Assembly (NCBI GenBank): GCA_051294905.1
Contig: CM119383.1
Span: 7,998,001-8,062,000 of the forward strand
Length of the DNA stretch: 64,000 bases
From: Botryllus schlosseri
Lineage: Eukaryota
Direction of reading: 5' to 3'
The notes beneath the pieces are model-generated. The model saw nothing but the letters and a program-made list of their open reading frames with translations, was not told the DNA's origin and did not search any database. Made by a program: the position numbers and the translations under genes. This document shows, piece by piece, positions 1-62,033 of the stretch (position 1 is its first letter; each line of letters starts with the position of its first letter).

Positions 1-101
1 GGGAAAAATTCACCGATTTTTGAGAATTCTTCTCCGGTTTTGCAACTCCCAAATTTCTGAAAAAGTGTCCTCTTTTTAGATTTCCAAATATGGTAAGCCT
101 A
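1..101 (-). mobile_element. Truncated end of a hAT (Tip100/Arthur-like) MITE, same family as 10479..10730
   Basis: 1..101 (gggaaaaattcaccgatttttgagaattc...aaaagtgtcctctttttagatttccaaatatggtaagccta) matches the reverse complement of 10479..10580 and ends in a TAGG-type terminus. Confidence 0.75.
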
Positions 102-324
102 ATATATAGTCGATCACTGTATGAACTTCGCACTTCCAGCAGATCAGTGGTTCTACCGTGTGGTACACGAGATGTTTCCAGGTGGTACTGGAAACAATTT
201 CTGGTGACATATTCATCAAACTATACAGTCAAATGCCACCTTTAATTCATTAAACTACATCGCAAATGGCATTCTCTCTGGCGCATATGTATAAGCAGGA
301 ACGGACTACATGGTTGGTTCGATT

Positions 325-448
325 ATGTTCACAATAAGAACAGTTTTGTTCAAAATAAGAACAGTGTCATGTTCACAATAAGAACAGTCATGTTTACAAC
401 AGGAACAGTCTCATGTTCAAAATAAGAACAGTCGTTATATTCACAATA
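325..448. repeat. Minisatellite, ~20-bp unit (atgttcacaataagaacagt), about 5-6 copies
   Basis: Repeated aataagaacag...tgttca units are visible directly. Confidence 0.85.
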
Positions 449-469
449 ACTTCAGTCGCAGCACCAACA

Positions 470-705
470 TATCCCCCAGACACGATGTCCGGGTGGCAAC
501 ATAGTCCGAACACACCCCAGACATGATGTCCGATTACTCCCCAGACACGATGTCCGAGTGCCAACGCAGTCCGAACAAACCCCAGACACGATGTCCGAGT
601 GGCAACGTAGTCCGAACACGCCCCAGACATGATGTCCAAACACTCCCCAGACATGATGTCCGATTACTCCCCAGACACGATGTCCGAGTGCCAAAGCTAC
701 GATCA
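470..705. repeat. Minisatellite of mixed ~24/40-bp units built on ccccagaca(c)gatgtccga
   Basis: The core ccccagacacgatgtccgag recurs at least 6 times. It explains the repetitive spurious ORFs at 394..741. Confidence 0.85.
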
Positions 706-984
706 ATGATGTTCATTCTAGAATTGGGGAATTCCCTTTAGCAAAAAAAAGAAAAAGGGTTCACAAGTAGATGTTGCCGAGTTCACAGGAGTTTTCGCGA
801 TTTCTGCTGCAATTCGTATAAGATAGATGTAGAATTTTATTCTTGCGTACAGAATTCTAGTAACATATGGAATAGCCCAATATTGATATATTGATAACCA
901 CTTACACTAGAAAGCGGATTTGGGATTTTGGGCTTGAAAGATGCAGAAGCAACAAGCTTCTGTCTCACTTCTTCGGAACGTTGT

Positions 985-1255
985 CTTAAGAGAGAGAGAG
1001 AGAGATATGATATTCTTTCTCGCCTGCACCATCGAGATGGTTTGGCGACGGAGTTGCGATACGGCCCCATGAGGTCATCTAGTCTGCGCCCCCGTTTTTT
1101 TTTTTTTCTCCTCCATGCTATCCGTGATTGCTGAGCGCCTAGCAGGATAGCTGCGGATACCATTTTTCGAGTCTTTGGTATGACCCGGCCGGGGATCGAA
1201 CCCACGACCTACCGCTCGAGAAGCCGGACGCATAACCATTACACTATCTCGCTGA
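985..1255 (-). mobile_element. tRNA-derived SINE, probably carrying a Meta-type core domain
   Basis: The minus strand has an A box TAGTGTAATGG and a B box GGTTCGATCCC. These are followed by gtcataccaaagactcgaaaaatggta...gctaggcgctcagca (recalled as MetaSINE-like) and a (TC)n tail. There is no tRNA acceptor stem. Confidence 0.7.
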
Positions 1256-2092
1256 ACAGAAAAAAGTTAGGAATAAATTATTGATTTGTAGACCGACAAG
1301 ATTTTGAAGTTTGTGCAGACTAATACTCTGGTAGTGAAACCATCTTTCCAATATTTCTTTTTTTTTCAATATAGGCTAGAATTGATGTTTTTGTGTTTTC
1401 AATATGGATATGCAATTAATGTGCTTTCACAATTGATTTGTCAGTCACAAGATCAGTCACTACACGCTTTTGGCATCGTACCCACTGCTTCAGTGCCTAA
1501 TTTTACCTAAAACGATATAAAAACAATAATTGGCTTGTAACTTTTTTCCTGTTCATTTTTAAGACAAAGTTCTGTGGAAAAGAGGGATGTCGGATGGATT
1601 CTTGTTGCTTCTGCATCTTTTTAGCCAAAAATCAGCTTTCTAGTGTAAGTATATAGCAAAATTAGCTATTTTTGGCTCGTTTGGTGAAATTGCACGACCA
1701 CTAGAGGTACACGAGCCCAAAATCATTATAGAAATTTTATATTTTTTTATTTTGCACCACAAATGAAGTGTCTGTTAGAAATTCAAAATTTCCGGTAGTT
1801 CACTCCACCCTTACAATACAATATGATACAATTTAACACCAGCATGAGATATTGAGTTTAGAGCCAGAGATGTCAGTTACTTTAGAATTATAGTTGTATA
1901 TATTGTTCGAGGTAGTCAAAACCCCAAAATCTGTTGTATGGCCACACGGTCACAATATATGCTGATGTAGTCAGGTATTGATGTAAATATGCTTTACTAA
2001 TACTGTACTTACTAACGTATTTTTCATAACGTTTGCAGTCTTGCATTAAATAATATTATAATCATATTATGATCAATTGAAATCTTGGAGCC

Positions 2093-4789
2093 ATGACTGA
2101 AATACCTGGCATTTCTTATGATGAATTGTTTACATCAAAAGACAATGAATGCTACCTGGGAGAGGGATCCTTTGGTCTGGTCTACAGGTGCTACCACCAA
2201 ACTATTGGAGATGTTGCTGTCAAGATATTGAATTCAGCAACTTCTAAACCTGTCCAGTCGTTCAACAAAGAAGGTCAGATGCATTTGCGTGCAAATATGT
2301 GTGAGCATATCTTAACCTTACATGGCATCACGCAGAAAGATAATTTTGTGGGTCTTGTTCTTGAGTACATGCCATATGGTTCTCTGTCGGGTATGGTCCT
2401 GAATGAGGATATCAAACTGCCTTGGCGTTTCCGATTACGAACATTGTGCGAAATAGCATCAGGAATTCATTATCTTCACCATCTACCACATGGAAGAAGA
2501 CTTGTACATTGCGATATAAAATTGGAAAATATCCTCTTGAATGGTGATCTTCATGCCAAGATTGGAGACTTTGGCGGTGCTAACTTGTCAACTTACACTG
2601 GACACACCATGACCACTACAAGCAGAGGCACCAGAGGTGTGGAATGTGATGAGAGAAAACTGCAATATACTTTGAGTTACACTGCACCCGAAGTGCTTTC
2701 TTGCATAGACATTGATCGGACCCCAGCAATGGATGTATATAGCATGGGCATAGTCATGTATGTAATTACAGTACGGAGAAATGCCTTTGACACACTAGAA
2801 AAAGACGTGATCATACATGGAGTGAAAAGTGGGCAACGTCCAAAAAAATATATCAAGGATGTCGAAGACGACCTGGTTGAAGATGGAGATGATGTAGGTT
2901 TACAAATTTTCAGACTTCTTGGCCACCTACGACCTCAATGTTGGCATCAAGACCCCTTACAGCGTATGAAAATAGAGAATATTCGTAATAGCTTGGTGAA
3001 CAAATTCAACAGTTTCTCATTGGATTCGGTGGAAAGGGACTTAGCGATTGTTAAGGCACAACTACAACGCGGTAATCCCACTGTGCCTTCGGATTGTGTA
3101 CCAATAATTCAAAAATACAAAGAATTGTTGCAAGGTGGTAAACTCGTTGTTCCGAATTCATCAAGAACGGGGACCAAAGATAAGCCCCATCAACGAGCGT
3201 TTGTGCAAGGTAACCGTAGAGCACCTGACACATCACAGTCGAATGTCCAACAGAGCCCTGTACGTCAACCACAGGCAGAATCACCAACCCTACCATATCT
3301 GGCTGGCGCATTGGGCTCGCCGCGGTCACAAAGCACTTCTGGAATGAGGGCAACTCAGCACGCACCTCAGCCGGTAAGAAGCTTTTCAACCCCTAACCCG
3401 TCACTGACCAAGCCTCATATCATTCAAAGATCACCCAGCCCCAGCACTGCTTTACCAGAAGAAATATCTCAAGTCAATATATCTTCTTCACCACAGCAAC
3501 AGGGTGTGATAGAACTAGAAGCAAGCTTTCGAGATCCCTATTTGCGTCAAGGAAATGCGGTGACCATGATAACAGATTTAGCGGCGATCAAAAATGCCCA
3601 GGTTGGCCACGGTGGTTGGCACGACAAATTATTGAATGTGAGGGATGTTCAAGGTATTGTACGGTCAGTGGAGCCCAATGGTGATGTCACTGTTTCATTT
3701 TCAGGCGTTGAAAGCCATCGATTCAATCCGATCTCGTTAACTAAATTGCCATCTTCAAATGATTTGAGTGTGGGAGATTTCGTTAAGATTGCTCTGGAAA
3801 AGGACATCGTTAGTGCAATGCAGGAAGGACACGGGGGTTGGGTGGATGATATGTATAAATATTTCAAAGAAGATGGTCTTGTTTTTCGCTTTCTTTCCGA
3901 GGGAGATGTCCTCGTGGTGTATAAAACAGGGAAATACTTCAGGTACAACCCAGAAGTACTCACCAAGGTCAGAAATACACAGGAAGGTGTCCGGTTGAAC
4001 GATAACCCAGACATCGAAATCGGAGATTACGTTTACTACGATATGGACCGAGAGTTGCTGAAAGAATTGCAAGAACATTGCGGCGGGTGGAACGACGCTA
4101 TGGCTGATTTACAGGGAAAAGCTGGAAAATTTGTGTACGCCGATTATCACGGACGCGCTTTTATCGCTTACAGCAGCAAACAATGTTTTGTGTTCAATGC
4201 CGCAGTTATGAACAAAATTTCAACGGAAGAAGCCGTGCGGCGTTTCAAGCAGTCGAAAGAGGAAGCGAAAAAGGTTTCCAAGGAAAAAACAGAGAAACAG
4301 TTCAAAAAAAATAGGTTTGCGGTCGGCGACAAGGTTCGTGTATGCCTTCCTCTGGATATAGTAGTTGAGTTGCAAAAAGGTAACGGCGGCTGGTGCTACC
4401 AGATGCTTGAAGTTTACGGAATATCCGGCGTGGTTAAAGAATTCGATGAAGGTGAAAACGCTCAAGTGCTCTTTGACACCGGTAATAAATGGACCTTCAA
4501 TCCAGCGTCGTTGGAGAGAGTTCCGCTTGACGGCAATGCCGCCCCTCCCGATTATACCCCACCGTTTAAAATCGGCGATAAAGTACGAGTGAGTTTGAGA
4601 GAACTGAATAATGCGTCTCTAAATCAGATGCGGATAGCTTTCAAGCAGTTGGAGATTCCCGAGGATAAAGTGGAGATTTTGATGAAGACAGGCACGGTGC
4701 TCGGTATCGATGACGATATAGACGTCATAGTGTCGTTTGGTGACGAGAAAAACTACGGTTTGAAGCCGGAGCAACTTCAAAAAATATAA
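2093..4789 (+). CDS. Intronless RIPK-like (TKL) protein kinase with five C-terminal Mind-bomb REP (SH3_15-like) repeats, 898 aa
   Basis: Kinase motifs are GEGSFG, VAVK, HCDIKLENILL, DFG and YTAPE. A P/S/Q-rich linker follows, then repeats of the form GDxVxx...QxGHGGW...GxV..GDVxV.F....FNPxxLxK. A tttgcag acceptor lies ~55 nt upstream of the ATG. Confidence 0.9.
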   Translation: MTEIPGISYDELFTSKDNECYLGEGSFGLVYRCYHQTIGDVAVKILNSATSKPVQSFNKEGQMHLRANMCEHILTLHGITQKDNFVGLVLEYMPYGSLSGMVLNEDIKLPWRFRLRTLCEIASGIHYLHHLPHGRRLVHCDIKLENILLNGDLHAKIGDFGGANLSTYTGHTMTTTSRGTRGVECDERKLQYTLSYTAPEVLSCIDIDRTPAMDVYSMGIVMYVITVRRNAFDTLEKDVIIHGVKSGQRPKKYIKDVEDDLVEDGDDVGLQIFRLLGHLRPQCWHQDPLQRMKIENIRNSLVNKFNSFSLDSVERDLAIVKAQLQRGNPTVPSDCVPIIQKYKELLQGGKLVVPNSSRTGTKDKPHQRAFVQGNRRAPDTSQSNVQQSPVRQPQAESPTLPYLAGALGSPRSQSTSGMRATQHAPQPVRSFSTPNPSLTKPHIIQRSPSPSTALPEEISQVNISSSPQQQGVIELEASFRDPYLRQGNAVTMITDLAAIKNAQVGHGGWHDKLLNVRDVQGIVRSVEPNGDVTVSFSGVESHRFNPISLTKLPSSNDLSVGDFVKIALEKDIVSAMQEGHGGWVDDMYKYFKEDGLVFRFLSEGDVLVVYKTGKYFRYNPEVLTKVRNTQEGVRLNDNPDIEIGDYVYYDMDRELLKELQEHCGGWNDAMADLQGKAGKFVYADYHGRAFIAYSSKQCFVFNAAVMNKISTEEAVRRFKQSKEEAKKVSKEKTEKQFKKNRFAVGDKVRVCLPLDIVVELQKGNGGWCYQMLEVYGISGVVKEFDEGENAQVLFDTGNKWTFNPASLERVPLDGNAAPPDYTPPFKIGDKVRVSLRELNNASLNQMRIAFKQLEIPEDKVEILMKTGTVLGIDDDIDVIVSFGDEKNYGLKPEQLQKI

Positions 4790-4869
4790 CCGCATGTATC
4801 ATCATTTCAACTTAATTCTGCATTTCGTATTTTAGACAGACAAGAGCCTATTCCAGTGATTGCCTTATA

Positions 4870-5131
4870 CGCTGTAATGTAAAAACATGCCGTCCCTTTA
4901 TTATCTTTCGTTTTACCGCATTGTAATGGATTCTGCAAGAATAGTGTGATCAGCAAAATAAAATCATGCTGTTGATCCACGCTGTATTAGCTTCAGCCAA
5001 TTCCCAGTTTCACTAGTTGACGTCTGCCTGCGCTGTAATGTAAAAATATGCCTTCCCTTTATTATCTTTCATTTTACATCATTGTAACGTCTCATGCAAG
5101 ATCAGCGAAATAAAATTATGCTTTTTAATCC
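4870..5131 (+). repeat. Direct duplication of a ~100-110-bp 3'UTR segment, each copy containing AATAAA
   Basis: cgctgtaatgtaaaaa(c/t)atgcc(g/t)tccctttattatctttc...aaataaaat(c/t)atgct occurs at ~4870 and ~5031. AATAAA is at ~4957 and ~5109. Confidence 0.8.
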
Positions 5132-6229
5132 ATTTGTATTGCTTTCAAACCCTGTATATCCTTGAGTATGAACTTATCTTTCATGTCAGGACGATCAGTT
5201 TCCCTTTGTAATCACTCACCCGCCACCAAATGAAGTGTGAGAAGCAAGCATTCGGCGATAAATCCTTTCCAAGTTCCAAACCCTATTTTTGAGAAGTCCT
5301 ACATGTTTCTTGTTCAATTTATTATAAATACAATGAAAGAAAAGTACAAGAGTGTGAAGTTGATTTGTTCGAATTGGACGGAAAACAGTAGGTTAGTAAT
5401 GATCACATACTTGGAGTGCTCAATTAGATTTGCCCACTGGCACCGACTACTCAAGCGGTCATGATTTTAGACTACTTCCACTCATCAGTCGTTTAGAACA
5501 AACTACTTGCTCATTAGACTTTGTAGTTGTACAGTAGAAGGTAGTTTTGGGTATCTCGGCTTCACCTTTATAATTGTCATAATAACTGGGCAAACAGTCC
5601 CAGTGCCACGGTATCTGAATTTATTTCGGAAAAATGCATCCACATGTAGAGTCATTAATCTTTTGGCATTATTTCCGAAGATTCATCAAAAGCACTCACC
5701 TCTGATTATTATCTGCTAAAGTATGCAACATTTCCAACAAATCTACTTTTTGACAGTAGGACTACACAAGTATATTTCACGGCCACTTGCAGTAGCTTTG
5801 AAAATAGTTATTTCTACTTGAGTAGGAATTTACAGCATTACTTCTATTCGAGTAGCAATGATGATAACTTCAACCACCTCTGACAAATGCAACATAGAAA
5901 GAAATGTATTCACACACAAGATTGAAAATGAAAGGTTCTTCGCACAATACATTACCTTATCAATGTGAGATCACATTAAATGTTCCGGAAAGTATGTGCG
6001 ACGGTGTAAATTTGTGTCAAATGACTGCATTGGATAATAACAAACAATCAAATTGCAATTCGAACGTAAAAATGCACCAAAGATGAGGAACAATTGCAGC
6101 TATCAATTCCACCATGACTACTTGCCCATCGGAAACACTTCAAGGACTAGTTCAATACTGCTACTGAAATTTTTTTCATTCATTCACCAATGACAAAATA
6201 TATCAAAGTTGTTAAGGTGTCAATTAGGA

Positions 6230-9091
6230 TCACGTTCTCGACGATAATTTTCCATCCTCTTCGATTTTCCATAACATCAATTTCATACACGCAGACGCAT
6301 CCTCCGCGCTGTCGTGACCTTCAGACGCACCCGATTGAATGACGATACCAAGATTTTCCGATGTTATATTTCTCAACGCACGCTTGTATGGAAAACCTTG
6401 TTTATGAGGGAACACAATCGAAGTGTCAATAACTGTTTCGTGGATTAATCTCAAAGCAACAAGGTCACTTTCGAGGCTGTGTCCCATCAAAATAGTATCG
6501 GCCGAAAATTTACACAAAAAAGTTGCTTGGACATCTCTCAATGTGGTCTTGACGCCTACCATATCCTGCTCTGTGATGCCACTCCAACGTGTGTTATAAT
6601 CCAGTACTCTGCCCGATGGCCGTACAAAAGTATCATACACGAGTTTGCATTTGTGGTCAAGCACACTGACTCTGGTCAGCTCGAGACCGTTTGTAGTGTA
6701 GGACATCTCACAATCGAGGGTGTAAATGCCGCAATTTCCATCAGGAGGCGGAGATTTGGCTAAGGTTCTCATATACCCAGATCGGTCTAATTTATTGTCA
6801 GCATGAACATGAGTGTCGCAAATAGCACAGCCTTCGGTGCCTTGGCGTTCTTGACAGCACGAATATCGCTTTTCCCATCCCTTACCTACCCTTGTCATGT
6901 ACGCTCTGCCCCAGTGATACGTACACTCCTCTTCTTTCGCGAATTTGCCTTTTCTGCTCAAAAAGAATTCCTTACCGCAGCGTACACAGATTTTCTTTTC
7001 ACTGGCGTTGAATGGTTTCATCGATTTTTCAGTTCTGAATTCGGCCTTGCCAGGGATATCACCGGGTCTCGGATACCCGTTCGCATCAAGTTGATCGTGC
7101 GTCATTATGTAAGTGCACATCTTCTCATACAAATCAGGAAGAGAGAGCTTAGCTCTTTCTTCCTTTTTCTGTATTGTGTATCCTCCTTTGCATGTTTTCG
7201 TATTGGTAATTAAGAGCTGATTGTGGGACATGGTTTTCTTTGTTCCGTTTGTAACTTTGGACTTTGCAGGTTTAGCGATGCAGGACTTATTTTGTGAGGT
7301 AGAACCCAAGGCCGGTTTATCTCTGAGTTTTCGTAGTGCGTTCGCCGCCAAACTGTTGTATATCACTTTGGAGCTACTTCGCTTTTTGCACTGTTCTTCT
7401 TCCATCAACGCCATAGAATAGGCTTTTTCATGATTTTGATTGCATATGCGCAAACATTCATCGATAAAAACTGTCAAGTATCGATGCCGCGAGTTGGATG
7501 GGACTTTACTGTGACGATCAATCGCAATACGAGGTCGTGGCGGAATGGACGATCCACTTTTGATGGCAATAACGTCCTTGGACTCGTGTGCAACACGGCG
7601 TACGCCTTTTGCAACTGTGCCGCACACGGTTGGTGCGTCCTCCACTTTGGGATACCAGGGGTTTGATGAATACTTTTCATCCAGTTCGCGAATATGTTTT
7701 CGGGATACGGAATTTTTCGCACGGACATCGGCCATTTTGTCGCTCACTTGATGAGCGACACGTTTTGTAAATTGTCCGGAAAGGACTCGTTGAGCTTCTT
7801 CCTCCTCGATGATATCGAGTCTTGCCATCATCATCTGTGCTGGTGTGGATCGTCGGTGTTTGATCTTAGAGGTAGTTGGTCGTTTCAGATTTTCTGCAGA
7901 TGAGGTAGCGTTTACGTGGGCTACTCTACGTTTTCCTATTGTGGGTGGTGCTTTCGGTTCTGGGCTGGATGGGTTCACAACAGTTGGTGTTTTGATGGGA
8001 TTGCTGGTCTTGCATTTCTTCTTGGAAGCTTCTTGAAAGATTTTCAAACATTCTTGGTAGGCGTCAGCTTTCGACAAGTCCTCGTTCAATTGTTTGATTT
8101 CATCCCGATCAACATATTTTGTAATATTCGCAGTGTCCATGTCTCTGGGGCGAATTTTTTTCAATTTAGTAGTCGATATTTTTGGTTTCACTTTGGTGTT
8201 CTTATCCACTTTTCTCGATTTCGATGGCTGGTCTTCTTCACTTCCATGTTTACGTTTCTTACCGGCTCCGTGTTCCAACTTTTGTTTTGATAAATCTTTC
8301 AACTTGGACTTGTCCTTAGTTTTCAATCTAATTTCTTTTGATTTTTTGGATTTGCTTTTCTTTGCGGCTTGATTTTCATCTCTGGTCAAATCGATAACTT
8401 CAGATTGGGATGTTGCAGAGCTTGGCACAGCAGCATCAGATTCAAAGTTGCTATCTTTTTCTTTGTCACTCTCATCTCCGAATATTTCTGATAGAGTGGT
8501 GACAGAACCAGTAGTTTTAGCATCCTCATCTTCAACAATAACAAATTTCTCCTCATCAATATCTTCCTGAGCACTGACGCCAAAATATTCATCGCAACTC
8601 ACTTCGTCGTCTGATACTTGATCTTGCGAGTAACTGGTACTTGGACTAGGCCCATTTGATTCATTTGAGGAATCCCTAATATTGTTTGATTTTGAATTGC
8701 GAATAGGATTGTAACTTCGACTAGACGTACTGTAATTAACAACTGGATCATATTCCATGTCAGTAGAAGGGTGGGTAAGTGAATGACTTCTGTAAATGTT
8801 CTTTTGTTTGGGCTTAGAGGGTCCTCTTGCATATGGCAGGACAGATGAAGATTTATCACTGCTCGATGCAGAGGACTCATAAGGGATAGGTTCGTAGCTT
8901 TCATTTTGTATAGGAAGCCCCCGTAATTCGTTCTTGATTTTCTCGATAGTATTTTCGATACTAGCGACGTGTGTTGAAGATGCGTTGTCCCTTTGTCTAG
9001 ATTTGTGACGGAATGGACAGTAAGGTCTCCGACAGCCGGATGCTTCTGCGGGACACGGCACGCCAGAGAAATATCCCGCGGATCGAAGCAT
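6230..9091 (-). CDS. REXO1: RNA exonuclease 1 homolog (Elongin A-binding protein 1), intronless, 953 aa
   Basis: N-terminal CRRPYCPFRH, CVRCGKEF and HWGR motifs, and a DEDDh exonuclease (LDCEM, GHSLESDL, HDSAEDA). Confidence 0.95.
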   Translation of the reverse strand: MLRSAGYFSGVPCPAEASGCRRPYCPFRHKSRQRDNASSTHVASIENTIEKIKNELRGLPIQNESYEPIPYESSASSSDKSSSVLPYARGPSKPKQKNIYRSHSLTHPSTDMEYDPVVNYSTSSRSYNPIRNSKSNNIRDSSNESNGPSPSTSYSQDQVSDDEVSCDEYFGVSAQEDIDEEKFVIVEDEDAKTTGSVTTLSEIFGDESDKEKDSNFESDAAVPSSATSQSEVIDLTRDENQAAKKSKSKKSKEIRLKTKDKSKLKDLSKQKLEHGAGKKRKHGSEEDQPSKSRKVDKNTKVKPKISTTKLKKIRPRDMDTANITKYVDRDEIKQLNEDLSKADAYQECLKIFQEASKKKCKTSNPIKTPTVVNPSSPEPKAPPTIGKRRVAHVNATSSAENLKRPTTSKIKHRRSTPAQMMMARLDIIEEEEAQRVLSGQFTKRVAHQVSDKMADVRAKNSVSRKHIRELDEKYSSNPWYPKVEDAPTVCGTVAKGVRRVAHESKDVIAIKSGSSIPPRPRIAIDRHSKVPSNSRHRYLTVFIDECLRICNQNHEKAYSMALMEEEQCKKRSSSKVIYNSLAANALRKLRDKPALGSTSQNKSCIAKPAKSKVTNGTKKTMSHNQLLITNTKTCKGGYTIQKKEERAKLSLPDLYEKMCTYIMTHDQLDANGYPRPGDIPGKAEFRTEKSMKPFNASEKKICVRCGKEFFLSRKGKFAKEEECTYHWGRAYMTRVGKGWEKRYSCCQERQGTEGCAICDTHVHADNKLDRSGYMRTLAKSPPPDGNCGIYTLDCEMSYTTNGLELTRVSVLDHKCKLVYDTFVRPSGRVLDYNTRWSGITEQDMVGVKTTLRDVQATFLCKFSADTILMGHSLESDLVALRLIHETVIDTSIVFPHKQGFPYKRALRNITSENLGIVIQSGASEGHDSAEDASACMKLMLWKIEEDGKLSSRT

Positions 9092-30899: not shown

Positions 30900-32246
30900 A
30901 TGGAATCTGCAAATGACTGGATGGACTGGTTTATTCAGGTCAACAACCCTACCATTGGCGAAATGTGGAATGACAACCCGACCTACCTGGTCGCCAACAT
31001 CCTCTTCATAACGATGGCATGTCTTTCGTTGTTGTTTGGTCTACGTCGGGGAATAGGCAGCCGATATGTATACTTATGGATCGCTGCCGTGTTGCATGGC
31101 GTGGTCACGGAAATGGTCTCGTACAATTTACCGGATATCAACAATTTCTGGCATTCTCAAACGTTTATGATGTTTGCAGGAAGAAGGTTCCCACTGTATA
31201 TTGTCATATTCTACCCGGCTACTGTTGTTCACGCGTACGTTGCCGCGAGTAGATTGCGTTTGCCCTGGTGGGCTGAACCGTTTGCTGTCGGACTTTTTGA
31301 TGTTCTGATTGACTTTCCATACGATATTTTGGGTATAAAGATGGTGTGGTGGACATGGCACGACACTGATCCAAATATTTATGATCGCACTTACTGGGTG
31401 CCTTGGACTAGCTACATTTTTCATATGGCTTTTCATAGCTCGTTGGCGTTTTTAATCAACGGCACTAGACGCGTCATCACTGGAAATTCCGATAAAGACA
31501 AATCTTATGGTTTTTTCAAAGAGATGCTATGTGTGTTGATAACTTCCGGGCTTTCAATGGGTTTAGCGGTTCTGACGCAATTCATACCTATTTATCATGG
31601 GTTGAAAGATGGGTTTGGCATTCATAGTGAGATTATCGTACTGATCGTTATAGGTCTGTACGTTTCTATTGTGTGGTATGCCGACAGAATGCCTAAGGAA
31701 GAATCACGTTCTCAAATTGAGTCTAAAGGCACAGGCTGGTGTAACGAAACTGGAATCGCAATTTTACTGCATTATATCACGTTCATGGTATTGGTGTATG
31801 TTGCTAAACCAAACAACGTTATTTCAAACGGTTTACACGAGCCGTTAGGTCTTAAGCACCAAACCATGGAACAGTATTCGGCAGCTGGAGTAACATATAC
31901 AAAGCAACGTTACTTTGACCCATCCTCGTATGATGAAGGGTACATTGATTTTCATTGCGATCCAGCAGGCACTCCAAATGTGACTTCGAATCCTAATTTG
32001 ATAGGAAAAAATTGGTATACCATATGTGGAACGCCGTTTGATAATCATTACGAGTATATTGTGATTATATGGTCCTTTTGTGTTCTTGGATTGTATGCAT
32101 ATTATGTAGCTTTGTCAAGATCTTCAACTCAAGCTGATGTTGATAGACCCGTTGGGTACAAGAAACTTCGCGGCTTGAAGGATGGGGATGGCAAACCTTC
32201 TTTTGGTAAAGTAAAAGGAAAGAAGCTGAAAAATAAGAAAGAATGA
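30900..32246 (+). CDS. Uncharacterised multi-pass membrane protein (~9 TM), intronless, 448 aa
   Basis: Long ORF with about nine hydrophobic segments, a W/H/D-rich loop (DFPYDILGIKMVWWTWHDTDPNIYDR...WVPW) and a Lys-rich C-terminus ending KNKKE. Confidence 0.8.
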   Translation: MESANDWMDWFIQVNNPTIGEMWNDNPTYLVANILFITMACLSLLFGLRRGIGSRYVYLWIAAVLHGVVTEMVSYNLPDINNFWHSQTFMMFAGRRFPLYIVIFYPATVVHAYVAASRLRLPWWAEPFAVGLFDVLIDFPYDILGIKMVWWTWHDTDPNIYDRTYWVPWTSYIFHMAFHSSLAFLINGTRRVITGNSDKDKSYGFFKEMLCVLITSGLSMGLAVLTQFIPIYHGLKDGFGIHSEIIVLIVIGLYVSIVWYADRMPKEESRSQIESKGTGWCNETGIAILLHYITFMVLVYVAKPNNVISNGLHEPLGLKHQTMEQYSAAGVTYTKQRYFDPSSYDEGYIDFHCDPAGTPNVTSNPNLIGKNWYTICGTPFDNHYEYIVIIWSFCVLGLYAYYVALSRSSTQADVDRPVGYKKLRGLKDGDGKPSFGKVKGKKLKNKKE

Positions 32247-57343: not shown

Positions 57344-59344
57344 TTAGCAACCGGCTTTGGGCTTCGATTTTCTCCTCCAACGTGTTTCACAGGGGTCAAA
57401 TCCCCTTTCCTCCGACCCAATGACGGCCCACGGCGGCGTGGGCGCCATGTAATCGACCGCGGTAAAAGAGCAACCGTCGGCTACATGTCTCTGGTGCAGC
57501 TCGTGAAATTTACCATAGTCAATCCAGGTGTGCCACTGGTTGTTGATTTTGAATTTGGTGTTTGCAATCAGTACACAATTAGAATGCTCATGCTCGCACG
57601 CAACTTCATACTCCGGCAAGGAATCGGCCAACATCTGCACAAAATACAGAACTTCCTCATGCCAGGGAACGTTCTTCATCGTCAATCCGCCCGCAGTGGA
57701 GGTATCCCCGCAATAAGTAACCCCCTTGACTTCGATAAAATCCGGCCGACCGTGCTTCACCAAATCCGCGTACGATTCGATCTCTTCCACATTCCACGCC
57801 TTCACCAAAGTCAAGCGGTAAACGGTGCGCTGACCCTTTTCCGCCAAAGCCTTCAAGCTGTCGACAAACCTCGGCCAATAGTCTTTGAACAGAGGTCGGT
57901 CGATTTTTTTCAGGCTTTCCGGTGTCGCGGCGTCTACGCTAACGTACAGCTGAGTGATCGGTTCTAGATTTTTGATAGCGTCCGGAAATTGGGCATTGGT
58001 AACAAGAAACGTCGAGATGCCGCGGCCGTGCAGTAACTTTACAAAGTCGTTAATTTTAGGGTACATAATCGGCTCGCCGACTAGCGACAACGCGCAGTGT
58101 CTGATCGAAAAGCCTTCTGCGAATCTTTCCGGCTTCACGCCGGGCACACCTTTGAACTGTTTGATCATACTGTAATGGTTTTCCACGGCACCCTTCACAA
58201 TCATATCAGGTTCGTCCATTTTCCATTTCCACTCGGTGCCCACCGGGTTCGTATGATGCCGCCAGCAAAACACGCATTTGTTCGCACACGCCAGACTAGG
58301 CGTCGTTTCCATACACCTATGACTCTCTATGCCGTAGAAGGTGTGTTTGTAGCACCCGCCGCGACCGCGTAGCATAGATTTCGTCCAGCGGCATAATTTC
58401 ACTCCCGAGTGACTGCCTACTAGTTTGTAACCTTGTTTTGTGAGGGCTTCTCTCAGAGCGGGCGTAACCATTTCTTTAATTTCCCGTTTTTTCACCTTGC
58501 GCTTCACTTGTACTTTATTGGGGGACGATACCGTCATACTTGACATCTTGGTACCGATATCTTCAACATCCACCATCTCGTCGCTGTCATCGTTTTCACT
58601 GCTACTGCTGGATTCCGTGCAAGCACCACTGTCCATTTTTTCCGATTTGGTATCATTACCAGACACCGCGGTGGGGTTTCCGCCCTTCACGAGATCGGTA
58701 ATCACAGACAATATATCGTTAGCCCACTCATCAAAATCGAGTTCTTGGCTCCCGTATTTACTGTTCGCGACATTTTCATCGCCCTCTCCAAGCGGGAAAC
58801 ATCTCGTCGCGCTCAGTTTGTGCAGAAACTCGTCAATGCCTTTCGCAGCTTTGATATAGTTTCCGTCGTACAGAGAGTTCCCGCATCCGAACACGGCATA
58901 GTTCAAGCCGTGCAGTATCGATTTGCCGACTCGGAAATCGTGGGAAGCTTCCTCCAACCATTGATAAAACCATTTCGCGCTGTCGGGAGGTGTACCGTCG
59001 GTGTACGTGGAGATGAAAATCACCAGAATGCAATTCGACGATGCATCGTTGACCAGATGATCATCGGGATTATAATTTCTGACGTCGTACAAGTCGAAGT
59101 CGAGATTACGGTTTTGCGCGCGTCTGCCGAGCTCGAGACAGAATCTTTTGCATTTACCAGATTGCGTGCCGTACACAAACTTCACCCTTGGTTCTGCAGA
59201 TTTCTCCTCCGCAGTTTTATCCTTATTCTTATTCGATTTTTTCTTTCTTTTCCCAGACCGATCGGAAAACTGCTGTATAATAAGCGACGTGACGATGCCC
59301 ACGATCGCAAAAGTGAAGAATATGGTCAGAATAGATGTGTCCAT
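57344..59344 (-). CDS. TYW1: S-adenosyl-L-methionine-dependent tRNA 4-demethylwyosine synthase, intronless, 666 aa from the likely ATG
   Basis: N-terminal TM anchor, flavodoxin domain (YGTQSGKC, FGCGNSLY), radical SAM CANKCVFC, HSGVKLCRWTK and KGVTYCG. The ATG at 59344 follows tandem tttgcag acceptors. Confidence 0.95.
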   Translation of the reverse strand: MDTSILTIFFTFAIVGIVTSLIIQQFSDRSGKRKKKSNKNKDKTAEEKSAEPRVKFVYGTQSGKCKRFCLELGRRAQNRNLDFDLYDVRNYNPDDHLVNDASSNCILVIFISTYTDGTPPDSAKWFYQWLEEASHDFRVGKSILHGLNYAVFGCGNSLYDGNYIKAAKGIDEFLHKLSATRCFPLGEGDENVANSKYGSQELDFDEWANDILSVITDLVKGGNPTAVSGNDTKSEKMDSGACTESSSSSENDDSDEMVDVEDIGTKMSSMTVSSPNKVQVKRKVKKREIKEMVTPALREALTKQGYKLVGSHSGVKLCRWTKSMLRGRGGCYKHTFYGIESHRCMETTPSLACANKCVFCWRHHTNPVGTEWKWKMDEPDMIVKGAVENHYSMIKQFKGVPGVKPERFAEGFSIRHCALSLVGEPIMYPKINDFVKLLHGRGISTFLVTNAQFPDAIKNLEPITQLYVSVDAATPESLKKIDRPLFKDYWPRFVDSLKALAEKGQRTVYRLTLVKAWNVEEIESYADLVKHGRPDFIEVKGVTYCGDTSTAGGLTMKNVPWHEEVLYFVQMLADSLPEYEVACEHEHSNCVLIANTKFKINNQWHTWIDYGKFHELHQRHVADGCSFTAVDYMAPTPPWAVIGSEERGFDPCETRWRRKSKPKAGC

Positions 59345-59651
59345 ATCCAGAAACTGCAAATCAACTGCAAAAACAATATTCATAATAGATTTATGACCAT
59401 TTACAAGATAATATGCAAGTAATTTCAATTAAAAGCCTCGTATATCCATCCATATCATTGCACACACCACTGACGAAGATCAATAACAGATAAATACTCA
59501 AGGAACACATCTTTAAAAGCAAAACACCAACAATGTCCTCCAAAAATTTACGCTTGAAGCATCGATGCCCGATATCACAAGTATATACGAGCCTCTATTG
59601 TATCACGAACGAAGTGCAAACACCCGGTAAAACAGCAATACAAGAATCTGT

Positions 59652-62033
59652 TCACTGATCGTCGGCTTTTTTCTTCACGGAAACGGCCAACGATCGAATT
59701 TTAGGCAACTCTCCGGCGATGGCTCCCGCAACGTCCCCCTTTTCCACCACGCTTTTGATAACCAGAGTTTGATAATTCGATAGCTGCTTGTAGACATCGT
59801 CGTTTACGAGTCCTCGTAAAAACAAAATCACTTGCGGCACACACTTGCCCGGCATGTGAAGCATTTTCCCGGTCAAATTTTGAAACATGACCGCCGCACA
59901 AAGATGCAGGGCTGTAGCGGGATCCGTCTCTCCCTCTAACTGTTTAATCAGCCCCATCTTATACCCGTGCAGAACTTGCCTATCTTTTTTCTTATCTGTC
60001 TTTTTCAGCATGACACTGCAAACGTCCGGAGCCACCGCGTCGGTGAAGGCCTCTTTGAAATCGTCAATGCTTTTCCCTGATAATGACTGCTGCAGCGTTT
60101 TCAGAGGGGAGTGATACACTTCTGGTAGCCTAGTCAAGATTTTAATTCGAATATCGTGTGTGACTTCTTTATTCTCTTCGATCCCTGTAAGATATTCAGA
60201 TCCCACCATGTTAAAAAGCACGTTGGTGATATCGGTGCAGAGCGATTTCAGCAAATGTTTCCGGAAGATTACAGCACTTTCGTCGCTAAAACTATCATAA
60301 GCCTCGTTAAACAGTTTTATATTAACCCAAGTACTGTTGATCTCTTCCTCGTAATATTTTCTAGACTTTTTGCTTTGAGGTTGGCCAGACGATGATTGCC
60401 CGCCTTCCGACTGTTTTTTTCTTTCCGAAACCGCAATTTGGAAGACCGAATTCGAAAGCTCTTTGTAAGCGGAATTCAACGGCCTGTGAAGCCTTTCTGA
60501 TATCTCTCTGAGTAAGATTGGAGGGCAGTCGTCACCTATTTCTCCAACCAGGACTTCATGCAGCTCTTCTATATTCATGAATTCCATTTCTTTCGTCGCT
60601 GACGCCTTATTCTTCTTGTTCTGCTCTTCCTCTTCGTAAGCAGCCTCTGCCTCCCTTTGTTTTTTCAAGCGCTTTTTGTCTTTTCCTCTTGTTTTCATCT
60701 CTCTCCCTCCAATACCGGACCCGGCAGCCCCTCGTTTCTTTTTAGGCTCATTTGAAACAGAAGTCTGGACCACGTCTTCCTTTGTTTCAGGTTCCGCTTT
60801 CTTTTTATTAGTCACCATATGTGTGGAATACAATTCCATTTCCTCCTCGGTGAGAGCGAACACGGTGGCGTCCTTTGCCGCGACCTGCGCCCGTTCTTTC
60901 ATTATGGGATCAAAGATTTCCCGACATTTTTGTTGAAATTCAACGCTGGCAAACACCGAACCGACAACGATACCTATCTCTTTTTTACGGCCTTGACGCT
61001 CTTTGAGAGCGTGATTCAGAATCATTTCCGAATCTACATCTGAGAAAGGCGAGGGTAGGATAGGTTGCATGTCTGTCCAACCGCCAGACGCTAAAGTTTC
61101 ATCAATCGTCGCTCCGACAAGGTTTACAATGGTGGGACCAACGGCGACACTTTTCAGCAAAATCGTGTCGTTGTAGCGTCCTCTGATGTACGATTTACCG
61201 CTATCAATACCAAGCCTTGACAGCATTTCAAATTCAACAAAACCGTTCTGTTGATAGAAATTGTCGACCGACTGATTTTGGGTTCGTACATACATTTGTG
61301 GTAAAAACGTAGATTTATCGGATCTTTTGCCGATGATATCACCTTTAATCCTGTTTTCGGCAATAAGTTCTTCCACAATATGAAAGAAAAGCTTATTCGA
61401 CATTCCACATTCTCCCAATATCGGTTGGAGAACAGTAGGCCTGGTGACAGCGCTAAGCATACCACGAACTGTAGCCTTGTGCTGCGCAATAAAGGCTTCC
61501 GTGAAAATCGCATCTTTATTAGTCTCATCAAGTCTGCCATCGATTAAACTCCCGATACGTGACACAAGCTCCGACACAAGAAAATCTCCCGGTAAATCGT
61601 TCGACTTACACAAGTCAGCGATTCTGACTTGACCAACACTTTGCAGAGTATCGTTTATCTCCTCTGCCAAATGATCCAAATAAGTTTTATCCACAAGCTG
61701 ACCTAACACTAAAAATACTGCATTACTCGATGATGCGATTTCATTCGCCTTCGTCTCGATGTGAGAGTAATCCACATTGAGAATATTCTGCAGCTCCACA
61801 AGACTGACGCGACCTCCGTGGATATAAAGCTCATCCTTGATTTCTCGAGCGAGCTGTCCAGGGGTAAGATACTCCTTTCCGTCCATAGTGTGTATGACTT
61901 CGAGAAGTTTCATTTTCTGCAATTTCAAAAGAATTTCGATGCAGTTTCTCTCGGAGAGCTTTTGCGTCGTCGTGGAATCCTGCGCTCGTTTCAAGTCGAG
62001 CATAAGTTGCTCGATGTCATTCCAATCCGACAT
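59652..62033 (-). CDS. UFL1: E3 UFM1-protein ligase 1, intronless, 793 aa
   Basis: LKRAQ...KLSERNCIEIL, DGKEYLTP...EIKDELYIHGGRVSLVEL and a basic GGREMKT region. Confidence 0.95.
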   Translation of the reverse strand: MSDWNDIEQLMLDLKRAQDSTTTQKLSERNCIEILLKLQKMKLLEVIHTMDGKEYLTPGQLAREIKDELYIHGGRVSLVELQNILNVDYSHIETKANEIASSSNAVFLVLGQLVDKTYLDHLAEEINDTLQSVGQVRIADLCKSNDLPGDFLVSELVSRIGSLIDGRLDETNKDAIFTEAFIAQHKATVRGMLSAVTRPTVLQPILGECGMSNKLFFHIVEELIAENRIKGDIIGKRSDKSTFLPQMYVRTQNQSVDNFYQQNGFVEFEMLSRLGIDSGKSYIRGRYNDTILLKSVAVGPTIVNLVGATIDETLASGGWTDMQPILPSPFSDVDSEMILNHALKERQGRKKEIGIVVGSVFASVEFQQKCREIFDPIMKERAQVAAKDATVFALTEEEMELYSTHMVTNKKKAEPETKEDVVQTSVSNEPKKKRGAAGSGIGGREMKTRGKDKKRLKKQREAEAAYEEEEQNKKNKASATKEMEFMNIEELHEVLVGEIGDDCPPILLREISERLHRPLNSAYKELSNSVFQIAVSERKKQSEGGQSSSGQPQSKKSRKYYEEEINSTWVNIKLFNEAYDSFSDESAVIFRKHLLKSLCTDITNVLFNMVGSEYLTGIEENKEVTHDIRIKILTRLPEVYHSPLKTLQQSLSGKSIDDFKEAFTDAVAPDVCSVMLKKTDKKKDRQVLHGYKMGLIKQLEGETDPATALHLCAAVMFQNLTGKMLHMPGKCVPQVILFLRGLVNDDVYKQLSNYQTLVIKSVVEKGDVAGAIAGELPKIRSLAVSVKKKADDQ

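Follow-up and report, generated by a model that had tools for sequence, protein, structure and literature searches.

The genome of the ascidian Botryllus schlosseri encodes a protein in which a RIPK-like kinase is followed by five repeats of the REP type known from the Mind bomb proteins. A RIPK-like kinase thus carries a putative recruitment module that had not been described before; in itself it is no new kind of system. The gene lies in a stretch of 64,000 nucleotides (assembly GCA_051294905.1, contig CM119383.1, positions 7,998,001 to 8,062,000 of the forward strand), which is called the window below. At 2093-4789 on the plus strand of the window, the list of open reading frames (ORFs) contains one uninterrupted, ATG-initiated ORF of 898 aa without internal stop. 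Only four open codons precede this ATG and the orthologues share the same start position in the alignment, so that the N-terminus of the protein is complete.

Domain assignment by Pfam gives a clear bipartite layout. Pkinase is found at residues 21-299 (E 2.5e-36, profile positions 6-259 of 263), with PK_Tyr_Ser-Thr matching as well (E 2.1e-29), and SH3_15/PF18346 is found in five stretches (E 2.3e-51, 172 bits against a gathering cut-off of 24 bits). SH3_15 is the Pfam "Mind bomb SH3 repeat domain" and corresponds to REP. The borders of the first four units (R1-R4) were set with a unit hidden Markov model (HMM) built from the orthologues. The array starts at about nucleotide 3539 of the window, or at 3512 when a conserved helix before R1 is counted in. 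Ser, Pro and Gln account for 60 of 154 residues in the linker between the two parts (residues 321-473). At E <= 1, Pfam detects no ankyrin repeat, death domain, CARD, RING, Mib_herc2 (PF06701) or ZZ (PF00569) in the protein, and no MZM module (Mib_herc2-ZZ-Mib_herc2). A relaxed pattern for the RHIM-like tetrad, [IVL]Q[IVLCF][GNS], occurs in none of the six orthologues (0/6). The original prediction, made from the letters of the window, had described an intact kinase, a low-complexity linker, and four clear and one divergent REP repeat at about 3533..4786, with no ankyrin, death, CARD or RHIM element. This layout is borne out by Pfam and the unit HMM, and the predicted coordinates agree with the start of the array given above. 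The repeats do match the SH3_15 HMM, and neither Pfam nor the tetrad scan finds any of the elements said to be missing.

Among solved structures, the kinase is matched best by RIPK3 (E 3.3e-27) and RIPK1 (1e-24), with IRAK4 and RIPK2 next. At the residue level, the features of an active eukaryotic kinase are present (Gly-rich loop, VAIK Lys, αC Glu, HxD, DFG and APE). Indeed, G23/G25, K44, E60, H139-x-D141, K143, N146, D159-F-G161 and A198-P-E200 are invariant in six of the six orthologues. Judged from these residues, the protein is apparently a catalytically competent, RIPK-like Ser/Thr kinase.

Its position was examined in a maximum-likelihood tree of 86 rows with supports from the Shimodaira-Hasegawa-like approximate likelihood ratio test (SH-aLRT), in which the vertebrate RIPKs are represented by a single RIPK3 and by no RIPK1, RIPK2 or RIPK4. 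The six kinase-REP proteins group together (SH-aLRT 99) and are nested (99) in a clade of 75 rows, whose named members are all ascidian (Clavelina, Ciona, Styela) and are automatically annotated as "RIPK1-like" or "RIPK2-like". This larger clade groups (94) with mammalian RIPK3, the kinase-death-domain gene of the B. schlosseri genome and amphioxus kinases, apart from the plant tyrosine kinase-like (TKL) and IRAK-like outgroups. By the PDB ranking and this tree, with its one vertebrate RIPK, the kinase falls in the RIPK family. The intact TKL/RIPK-type kinase of the original prediction is thus upheld at the sequence level by Pfam, the PDB ranking, the tree and the invariant residues. In the same genome, the closest paralogue is a RIPK1-like gene with a kinase and a C-terminal death domain, and there is also an IRAK-like gene with a death domain followed by a kinase.

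In the tunicate clade, the kinase stands at the N-terminus and the C-termini differ, with Kelch repeats, Ras/Roc and a second kinase among them. From its nesting in this clade, the kinase-REP gene can be regarded as one outcome of a diversification of RIPK-like kinases that is specific to tunicates. It has been reported that canonical RIPK1 is absent from tunicates (PMC12119088), and such a diversification fits with this absence. A broad, lineage-specific diversification of this kind seems to be undescribed in the papers on RIPK evolution that were consulted. Tunicate RIPK-like kinases with Kelch repeats, a Ras/Roc GTPase or a second kinase were seen in Clavelina and other assemblies (P0114, P0277, P0112, P0120 and P0124).

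The combination of kinase and REP array is not confined to B. schlosseri. Five full-length proteins of the same architecture came out of a search through about 5.8 billion protein clusters; they have 41-59% identity and 100% coverage, and all are apparently ascidian. The only named one is "uncharacterized protein LOC120339224 [Styela clava]" (P0003), the others being P0001, P0002, P0004 and P0005. In each of them, kinase, linker and five REP units follow in the same order in an intronless coding sequence (CDS). The intronless CDS of S. clava also stands beside an EloA-BP1/REXO1-like gene (microsynteny), and the remaining orthologues are continuous CDSs too, P0004 and P0005 being paralogues from one sequencing run. 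There is no poly(A) tail at the ends of the 3.3-kb contig carrying P0001. In an exhaustive HMMER scan of 1.84 billion representatives, the score drops from 1182 bits within the family to 273 bits. No REP-only or fragment orthologues were found, the best match of the array alone as query reaching 89 bits and 28% identity. From this score gap and the lack of orthologue fragments, the kinase-REP family is small. A word search with the kinase region, which is an insensitive one, returned only P0001, one RIPK3 and plant receptor-like kinases. At least five organisms share the gene, and judging by the databases, the family is confined to a small group of ascidians. In line with the original prediction, the architecture is neither widespread nor annotated, the sole named relative among the five being called "uncharacterized".

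Conservation is unevenly distributed along the protein. Mean pairwise identity among the six orthologues is 59.5% in the REP array versus 51% in the kinase. R4 is the most conserved part of the whole protein (71% mean pairwise identity, 52% invariant columns) and R5 comes next (64%), whereas the linker has 22% mean pairwise identity and 2% invariant columns. In the weakly conserved residues 301-345 (mean identity 28.6%), a short post-kinase motif stands out. In a repeat tree, each of R1-R5 forms its own orthologous clade with a support of 98-99, which means that all five units were in place before the lineages diverged.

The kinase-REP gene is single-copy in its own 495-Mb genome, and its transcription was followed in a bulk RNA sequencing (RNA-seq) run of the same species, of which about 6% was examined as raw reads. 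The reads give low coverage over 1976-5660, which increases towards the 3′ end and extends over both halves of the gene; the intergenic bins on either side (1782-1975 and 5856-6049) have zero depth. At this low depth, no splice joints were found inside the ORF in these reads. Contig sets from three other studies tile 2230-5267 and have zero depth in the intergenic bins, which suggests that these sets are RNA. One of them bridges kinase, linker and R1 by overlapping pieces (2898-3255, 3205-3372 and 3343-3546). A single unspliced transcript is thus supported, short of proof. Kinase and REP halves were predicted to belong together; they stand in one ORF, and neither the reads nor the contigs split them.

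The identity of the array is also seen in its fold. As a profile against PDB, the array has MIB1 REP as its only match (4tse, E 2.4e-27), R2 aligning to the first MIB1 repeat and R4 to the second. Residues 474-898 were modeled by AlphaFold2 from the six-sequence alignment, with a mean predicted local distance difference test score (pLDDT) of 77 and a predicted template modeling score (pTM) of 0.62. In this model, the five units share a strand-helix-helix-four-strand pattern, R5 included, and R5 is predicted to have the same SH3-like fold as R1-R4 despite the absence of GGW. When the model was searched with Foldseek, the top matches in PDB were MIB1 MZM-REP and MIB1 REP. In AFDB/Swiss-Prot they were MIB1, MIB2 and Arabidopsis KEG, well above generic SH3-barrel arrays such as the KOW domains of SPT5.

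The source of the array may lie in the same genome, which contains two MIB-like loci with several exons and a set of about ten intronless genes that encode SH3_15-type units. The best non-orthologue matches of the R5 HMM are intronless SH3_15 genes of this genome (E 2.6e-7 in a small database), which align with R3-R5. These alignments hint modestly at a common ancestry of the array, or of its C-terminal part, with the intronless family instead of a direct derivation from MIB, and this family may be the source of the array of the kinase gene. A repeat-level tree of the array with MIB, amphioxus and the own-genome family has 71 columns only, and its deep nodes are without resolution. Of the "MIB array" proposed originally, the REP identity stands by Pfam, PDB and Foldseek. 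The array may not derive directly from MIB, since R5 is best matched by the intronless family. Members of this family have ORFs of 565-821 aa with units that include a GGW-less one resembling R5. They are located at G000:C1:41489854, C3:18332468, C3:20729078, C3:20787345, C7:3748551, C7:3864722, C7:9741985, C11:6975865 and C16:4277959 (loci L004, L006-L008, L010, L015-L031). Their N- and C-terminal regions have no Pfam or Atlas match, and an ESM Atlas look-up with one family member gave no usable match.

How does this protein compare with known ones? Vertebrate RIPKs carry a death domain, CARD, RHIM or ankyrin repeats as C-terminal recruitment modules, and they are functionally defined by these. 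The ascidian protein resembles RIPK1 and RIPK3, its best matches among solved structures, in having an N-terminal kinase, a long disordered intermediate region and a C-terminal recruitment module. It differs from them in having no RHIM, death domain, CARD or ankyrin repeats, and none of the vertebrate RIPKs is an orthologue of its kinase, which falls in a clade specific to tunicates in the kinase tree. With MIB1 and MIB2 (PDB 4tse, 4xi6), it shares REP/SH3_15 units that match in sequence and fold. However, there are five units instead of two, the fifth without GGW. MZM, ankyrin repeats and RING of MIB are all missing, so that the protein is neither an E3 ligase nor a member of the MIB family. 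MIB2 binds the linker of RIPK1 through MZM, not REP (Feltham et al., PMC5912950). For this reason, the idea that the fusion is a "Rosetta-stone" echo of the MIB2-RIPK1 contact was rejected.

Other pairings of a kinase with such repeats are found in amphioxus and in plants. Two amphioxus proteins, P0113 and P0119, consist of seven SH3_15 units and a C-terminal RIPK-like kinase, and two others, P0117 and P0134, have Neuralized NHR, three to seven SH3_15 units and a kinase. They are automatically named RIPK4, ANKK1 or "RING-type E3". Neuralized NHR is the ligand-binding module of the other Notch-ligand E3 ligase, and the amphioxus proteins thus unite the ligand-binding modules of both Notch-ligand E3 ligases with a kinase. 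When P0111 is counted with these four Branchiostoma proteins, the set covers NHR, 3-11 SH3_15 units, and either a RIPK-like kinase or ARM repeats. "SH3" has been listed among the domains of amphioxus RIPK homologues (PMC9573974). As in the ascidian protein, an SH3_15 array is paired with a RIPK-like kinase in a non-vertebrate chordate, but the order is reversed with the kinase at the C-terminus, the units are more numerous, and many of the proteins have Neuralized NHR. In the kinase tree, the amphioxus REP-kinase domains form a separate clade with RIPK3. A common origin of all REP-associated kinases was rejected, as the constrained tree is 52 log-likelihood units worse (approximately unbiased, AU, test, p 0.0058). 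From the separate clades and this rejection, the two chordate fusions are independent.

In Arabidopsis, KEEP ON GOING (KEG, Q9FY48) also has a kinase that precedes a long array of the same structural repeat class. Among the Swiss-Prot structural matches of the array model, KEG residues 1304-1621 rank fourth (Foldseek E 1.3e-16). KEG consists of RING, kinase and ankyrin repeats followed by HERC2-like repeats (PMC3697954), and these last repeats take part in protein interaction, in recruitment of EDR1 and possibly in dimerization (PMC3697954, PMC4022593). A sunflower RING-ankyrin kinase scores six SH3_15 units in Pfam (PMC11646777) and is presumably a KEG orthologue. The likeness is a partial one and not a shared membership, since the RING E3 domain and the ankyrin repeats of KEG are absent from the ascidian protein. 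KEG is a plant TKL kinase, whereas the ascidian kinase is nested in the tunicate RIPK-like kinases. The origins are therefore taken as independent, the KEG kinase being set apart by class. According to the original prediction, no protein with this architecture is known to have been characterized. This holds for the exact architecture; it does not hold for the pairing, which is not unique given the characterized KEG and the amphioxus proteins.

What the array does for the kinase can be approached by analogy with these proteins. On balance, it seems probable that the REP array targets the kinase to particular motifs or partners, which would bring it to its substrates and possibly activate it by clustering. 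The array would then serve in targeting or recruitment, like the C-terminal modules of other RIPKs. Its part under the strongest constraint would be R4-R5, with the disordered, fast-evolving linker joining the array to the kinase. It would dock on short linear motifs or partners, in the way that MIB1 REP docks on the C-box of JAG1 and Delta and the KEG repeats on EDR1, and the docking would deliver the kinase to its substrates. Clustering might in addition activate the kinase, which is how RIPK and IRAK kinases usually work. The protein may act in innate immunity or cell death, in Notch-ligand regulation or in another pathway.

Several points weigh against this proposal. No partner or substrate is on record for the kinase-REP protein. 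The term "RIPK-like" rests on best matches and a kinase tree with few vertebrate anchors. In the bulk RNA run, expression is low and mid-gene coverage thin, by which a continuous transcript is supported, short of proof. In the kinase itself, Ser takes the place of the third Gly in the Gly-rich loop of five of the six orthologues, and the Arg of HRD is replaced by Cys or Asn (HCD/HND); both changes are tolerated in many active kinases. Low expression, HCD/HND and the Gly-rich loop ending in Ser in most orthologues would also suit a pseudokinase scaffold, or a decaying lineage-specific chimera without an enzymatic role. However, the catalytic residues are invariant across six sequences that are only 43-59% identical overall, the ORF is intact in every species, synteny is kept and two copies are present in one sample, which makes such a scaffold or chimera highly improbable.

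Alternatively, the array might act within or between copies of the protein, through self-association or as a clamp on the linker or kinase, and regulate activity instead of selecting substrates. In KEG, the HERC2-like repeats function in protein interaction and possibly in dimerization (PMC3697954). RIPK-type kinases are activated by oligomerization, oligomeric RIPK1 having been described (PMC5912950), and the short conserved motif after the kinase domain is also consistent with an internal role. However, the contrast between the high conservation of R4-R5 and the fast-evolving linker fits an external conserved partner at least as well, and regulation of this internal kind is rather unlikely.

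A more specific idea was put forward as a possibility in the original prediction, namely that the array recognizes the tails of Delta/Jagged or other MIB clients and that the kinase phosphorylates Notch-ligand tails. Ligand endocytosis would then be controlled by a kinase and not by ubiquitin. R2 and R4 align closely with the two MIB1 REP repeats, which bind the C-box of JAG1 and Delta (PMC11887331), and the genome has three loci for DSL ligands (G000:C8:1227822, C11:14246686 and C7:4389012). The presence of Neuralized NHR in the amphioxus REP-kinase proteins is suggestive as well. However, REP is a secondary and weaker ligand-binding site of MIB1, in which MZM does most of the ligand binding (PMC11887331), and MZM is absent here. 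SH3_15 arrays also occur in many unrelated architectures, including those of protists and plants without a Notch pathway, which indicates that this fold is a general interaction module. We therefore consider a role on Notch-ligand tails unlikely. In a complex prediction, the REP array (window 3512-4786) and a 110-aa cytoplasmic tail of a Delta-like protein from the same genome (L042:5011-5340, minus strand), which is a disordered partner, scored 0.02 against a mark of 0.34, a value that speaks neither for binding nor against it.

A wider version of the same idea is that Mib-type REP arrays are general readers of the tails of membrane ligands and receptors, and that they were wired to RIPK-like kinases independently in two groups of non-vertebrate chordates, the ascidians and amphioxus, in the latter in combination with Neuralized NHR. 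We regard this as unlikely. If it were true, there would be a phosphorylation-based branch of the regulation of Notch-ligand or immune-receptor tails, which vertebrates lack, with RIPK-like kinases in place of RING ligases. Leaving tail reading aside and returning to the proposed targeting by the array, the Mind-bomb REP array would be a fifth recruitment solution for RIPK-type kinases, fixed and strongly conserved in one ascidian lineage. Taken together, the ascidian gene, the amphioxus proteins and KEG mean that a union of a TKL kinase with a Mib-type SH3 array has arisen at least three times. This recurrence suggests a general logic, in which REP-type arrays serve as docking platforms for kinases. 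The gene is thus an example of convergent domain pairing, with independent analogues in amphioxus and plants, and it adds to the picture of a RIPK repertoire rebuilt in tunicates, which lack canonical RIPK1. In practice, it offers a compact, RING-free protein for the study of ligand specificity in REP units. The coordinates of its parts are collected in Table 1.

Table 1. Parts of the kinase-REP gene and of its 3′ flank, in window coordinates.
Feature	Position	Strand	Residues and signature	Basis
Complete single-exon CDS, kinase-REP gene	2093..4789	+	898 codons + stop	ORF list, orthologue starts, no RNA splice joints
Protein kinase domain, RIPK-like	2153..2989	+	21-299	Pfam, PDB matches, invariant catalytic residues
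Short conserved post-kinase motif	3086..3127	+	332-345; P332 and K341 invariant	Orthologue alignment
Ser/Pro/Gln-rich low-complexity linker	3128..3511	+	346-473	Composition; weak conservation
REP/SH3_15 unit R1	3539..3751	+	483-553; GHGGW	Unit HMM E 8.7e-28; orthologous clade support 99
REP/SH3_15 unit R2	3761..3973	+	557-627; GHGGW	Unit HMM E 6.8e-31; aligns to 4tse residues 11-80
REP/SH3_15 unit R3	4010..4222	+	640-710; CGGW	Unit HMM E 3.2e-30; orthologous clade support 98
Long charged helix between R3 and R4	4223..4303	+	711-737	DSSP on AlphaFold2 model, array residues 238-264; identity 36%
REP/SH3_15 unit R4	4313..4525	+	741-811; NGGW	Pfam best stretch 742-807; aligns to 4tse residues 96-171
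Divergent unit R5	4562..4786	+	824-898; without GGW	Model secondary structure; mean pairwise identity 64%
Transcribed 3′ flank, probable 3′ untranslated region	4790..5660	+		RNA-seq depth to ~5270-5660, zero at 5856-6049

As in S. clava, the kinase-REP gene adjoins an EloA-BP1/REXO1-like gene, which lies at 6230..9091 of the window on the minus strand. This neighbor is itself a single long ORF (6230-9091), and the same applies to the other large genes of the window, namely a DUF7802 gene (30900-32246, plus strand), a TYW1-like gene with flavodoxin, radical SAM and wyosine domains (57344-59428, minus strand) and UFL1 (59652-62033, minus strand). The window is thus an unusually intron-poor neighborhood; in other parts of the genome, the Delta-like and MIB-like genes consist of several exons.

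Upstream of the start codon (window ~2020-2092), a polypyrimidine tract is followed by CAG (...tttttcataacgtttgcag) at a distance of about 55 nt from the ATG, and an upstream ORF of three codons is present at 2069-2080. The tract and CAG, with the candidate site near 2036, could be an acceptor for spliced-leader trans-splicing or the acceptor of an intron in the 5′ untranslated region; read depth is low there. Rfam and tRNA scans of window 1-6200 returned nothing. At about 1180-1253 on the minus strand, there is a tRNA-derived element resembling a short interspersed nuclear element (SINE), with a T-arm-like sequence GGTTCGATCCCCGGCCGGGTCA on that strand and no ARAGORN or Rfam match. RNA-seq depth over this element is several hundred-fold, and the reads run into template-switch/adapter sequence at 1249-1253.

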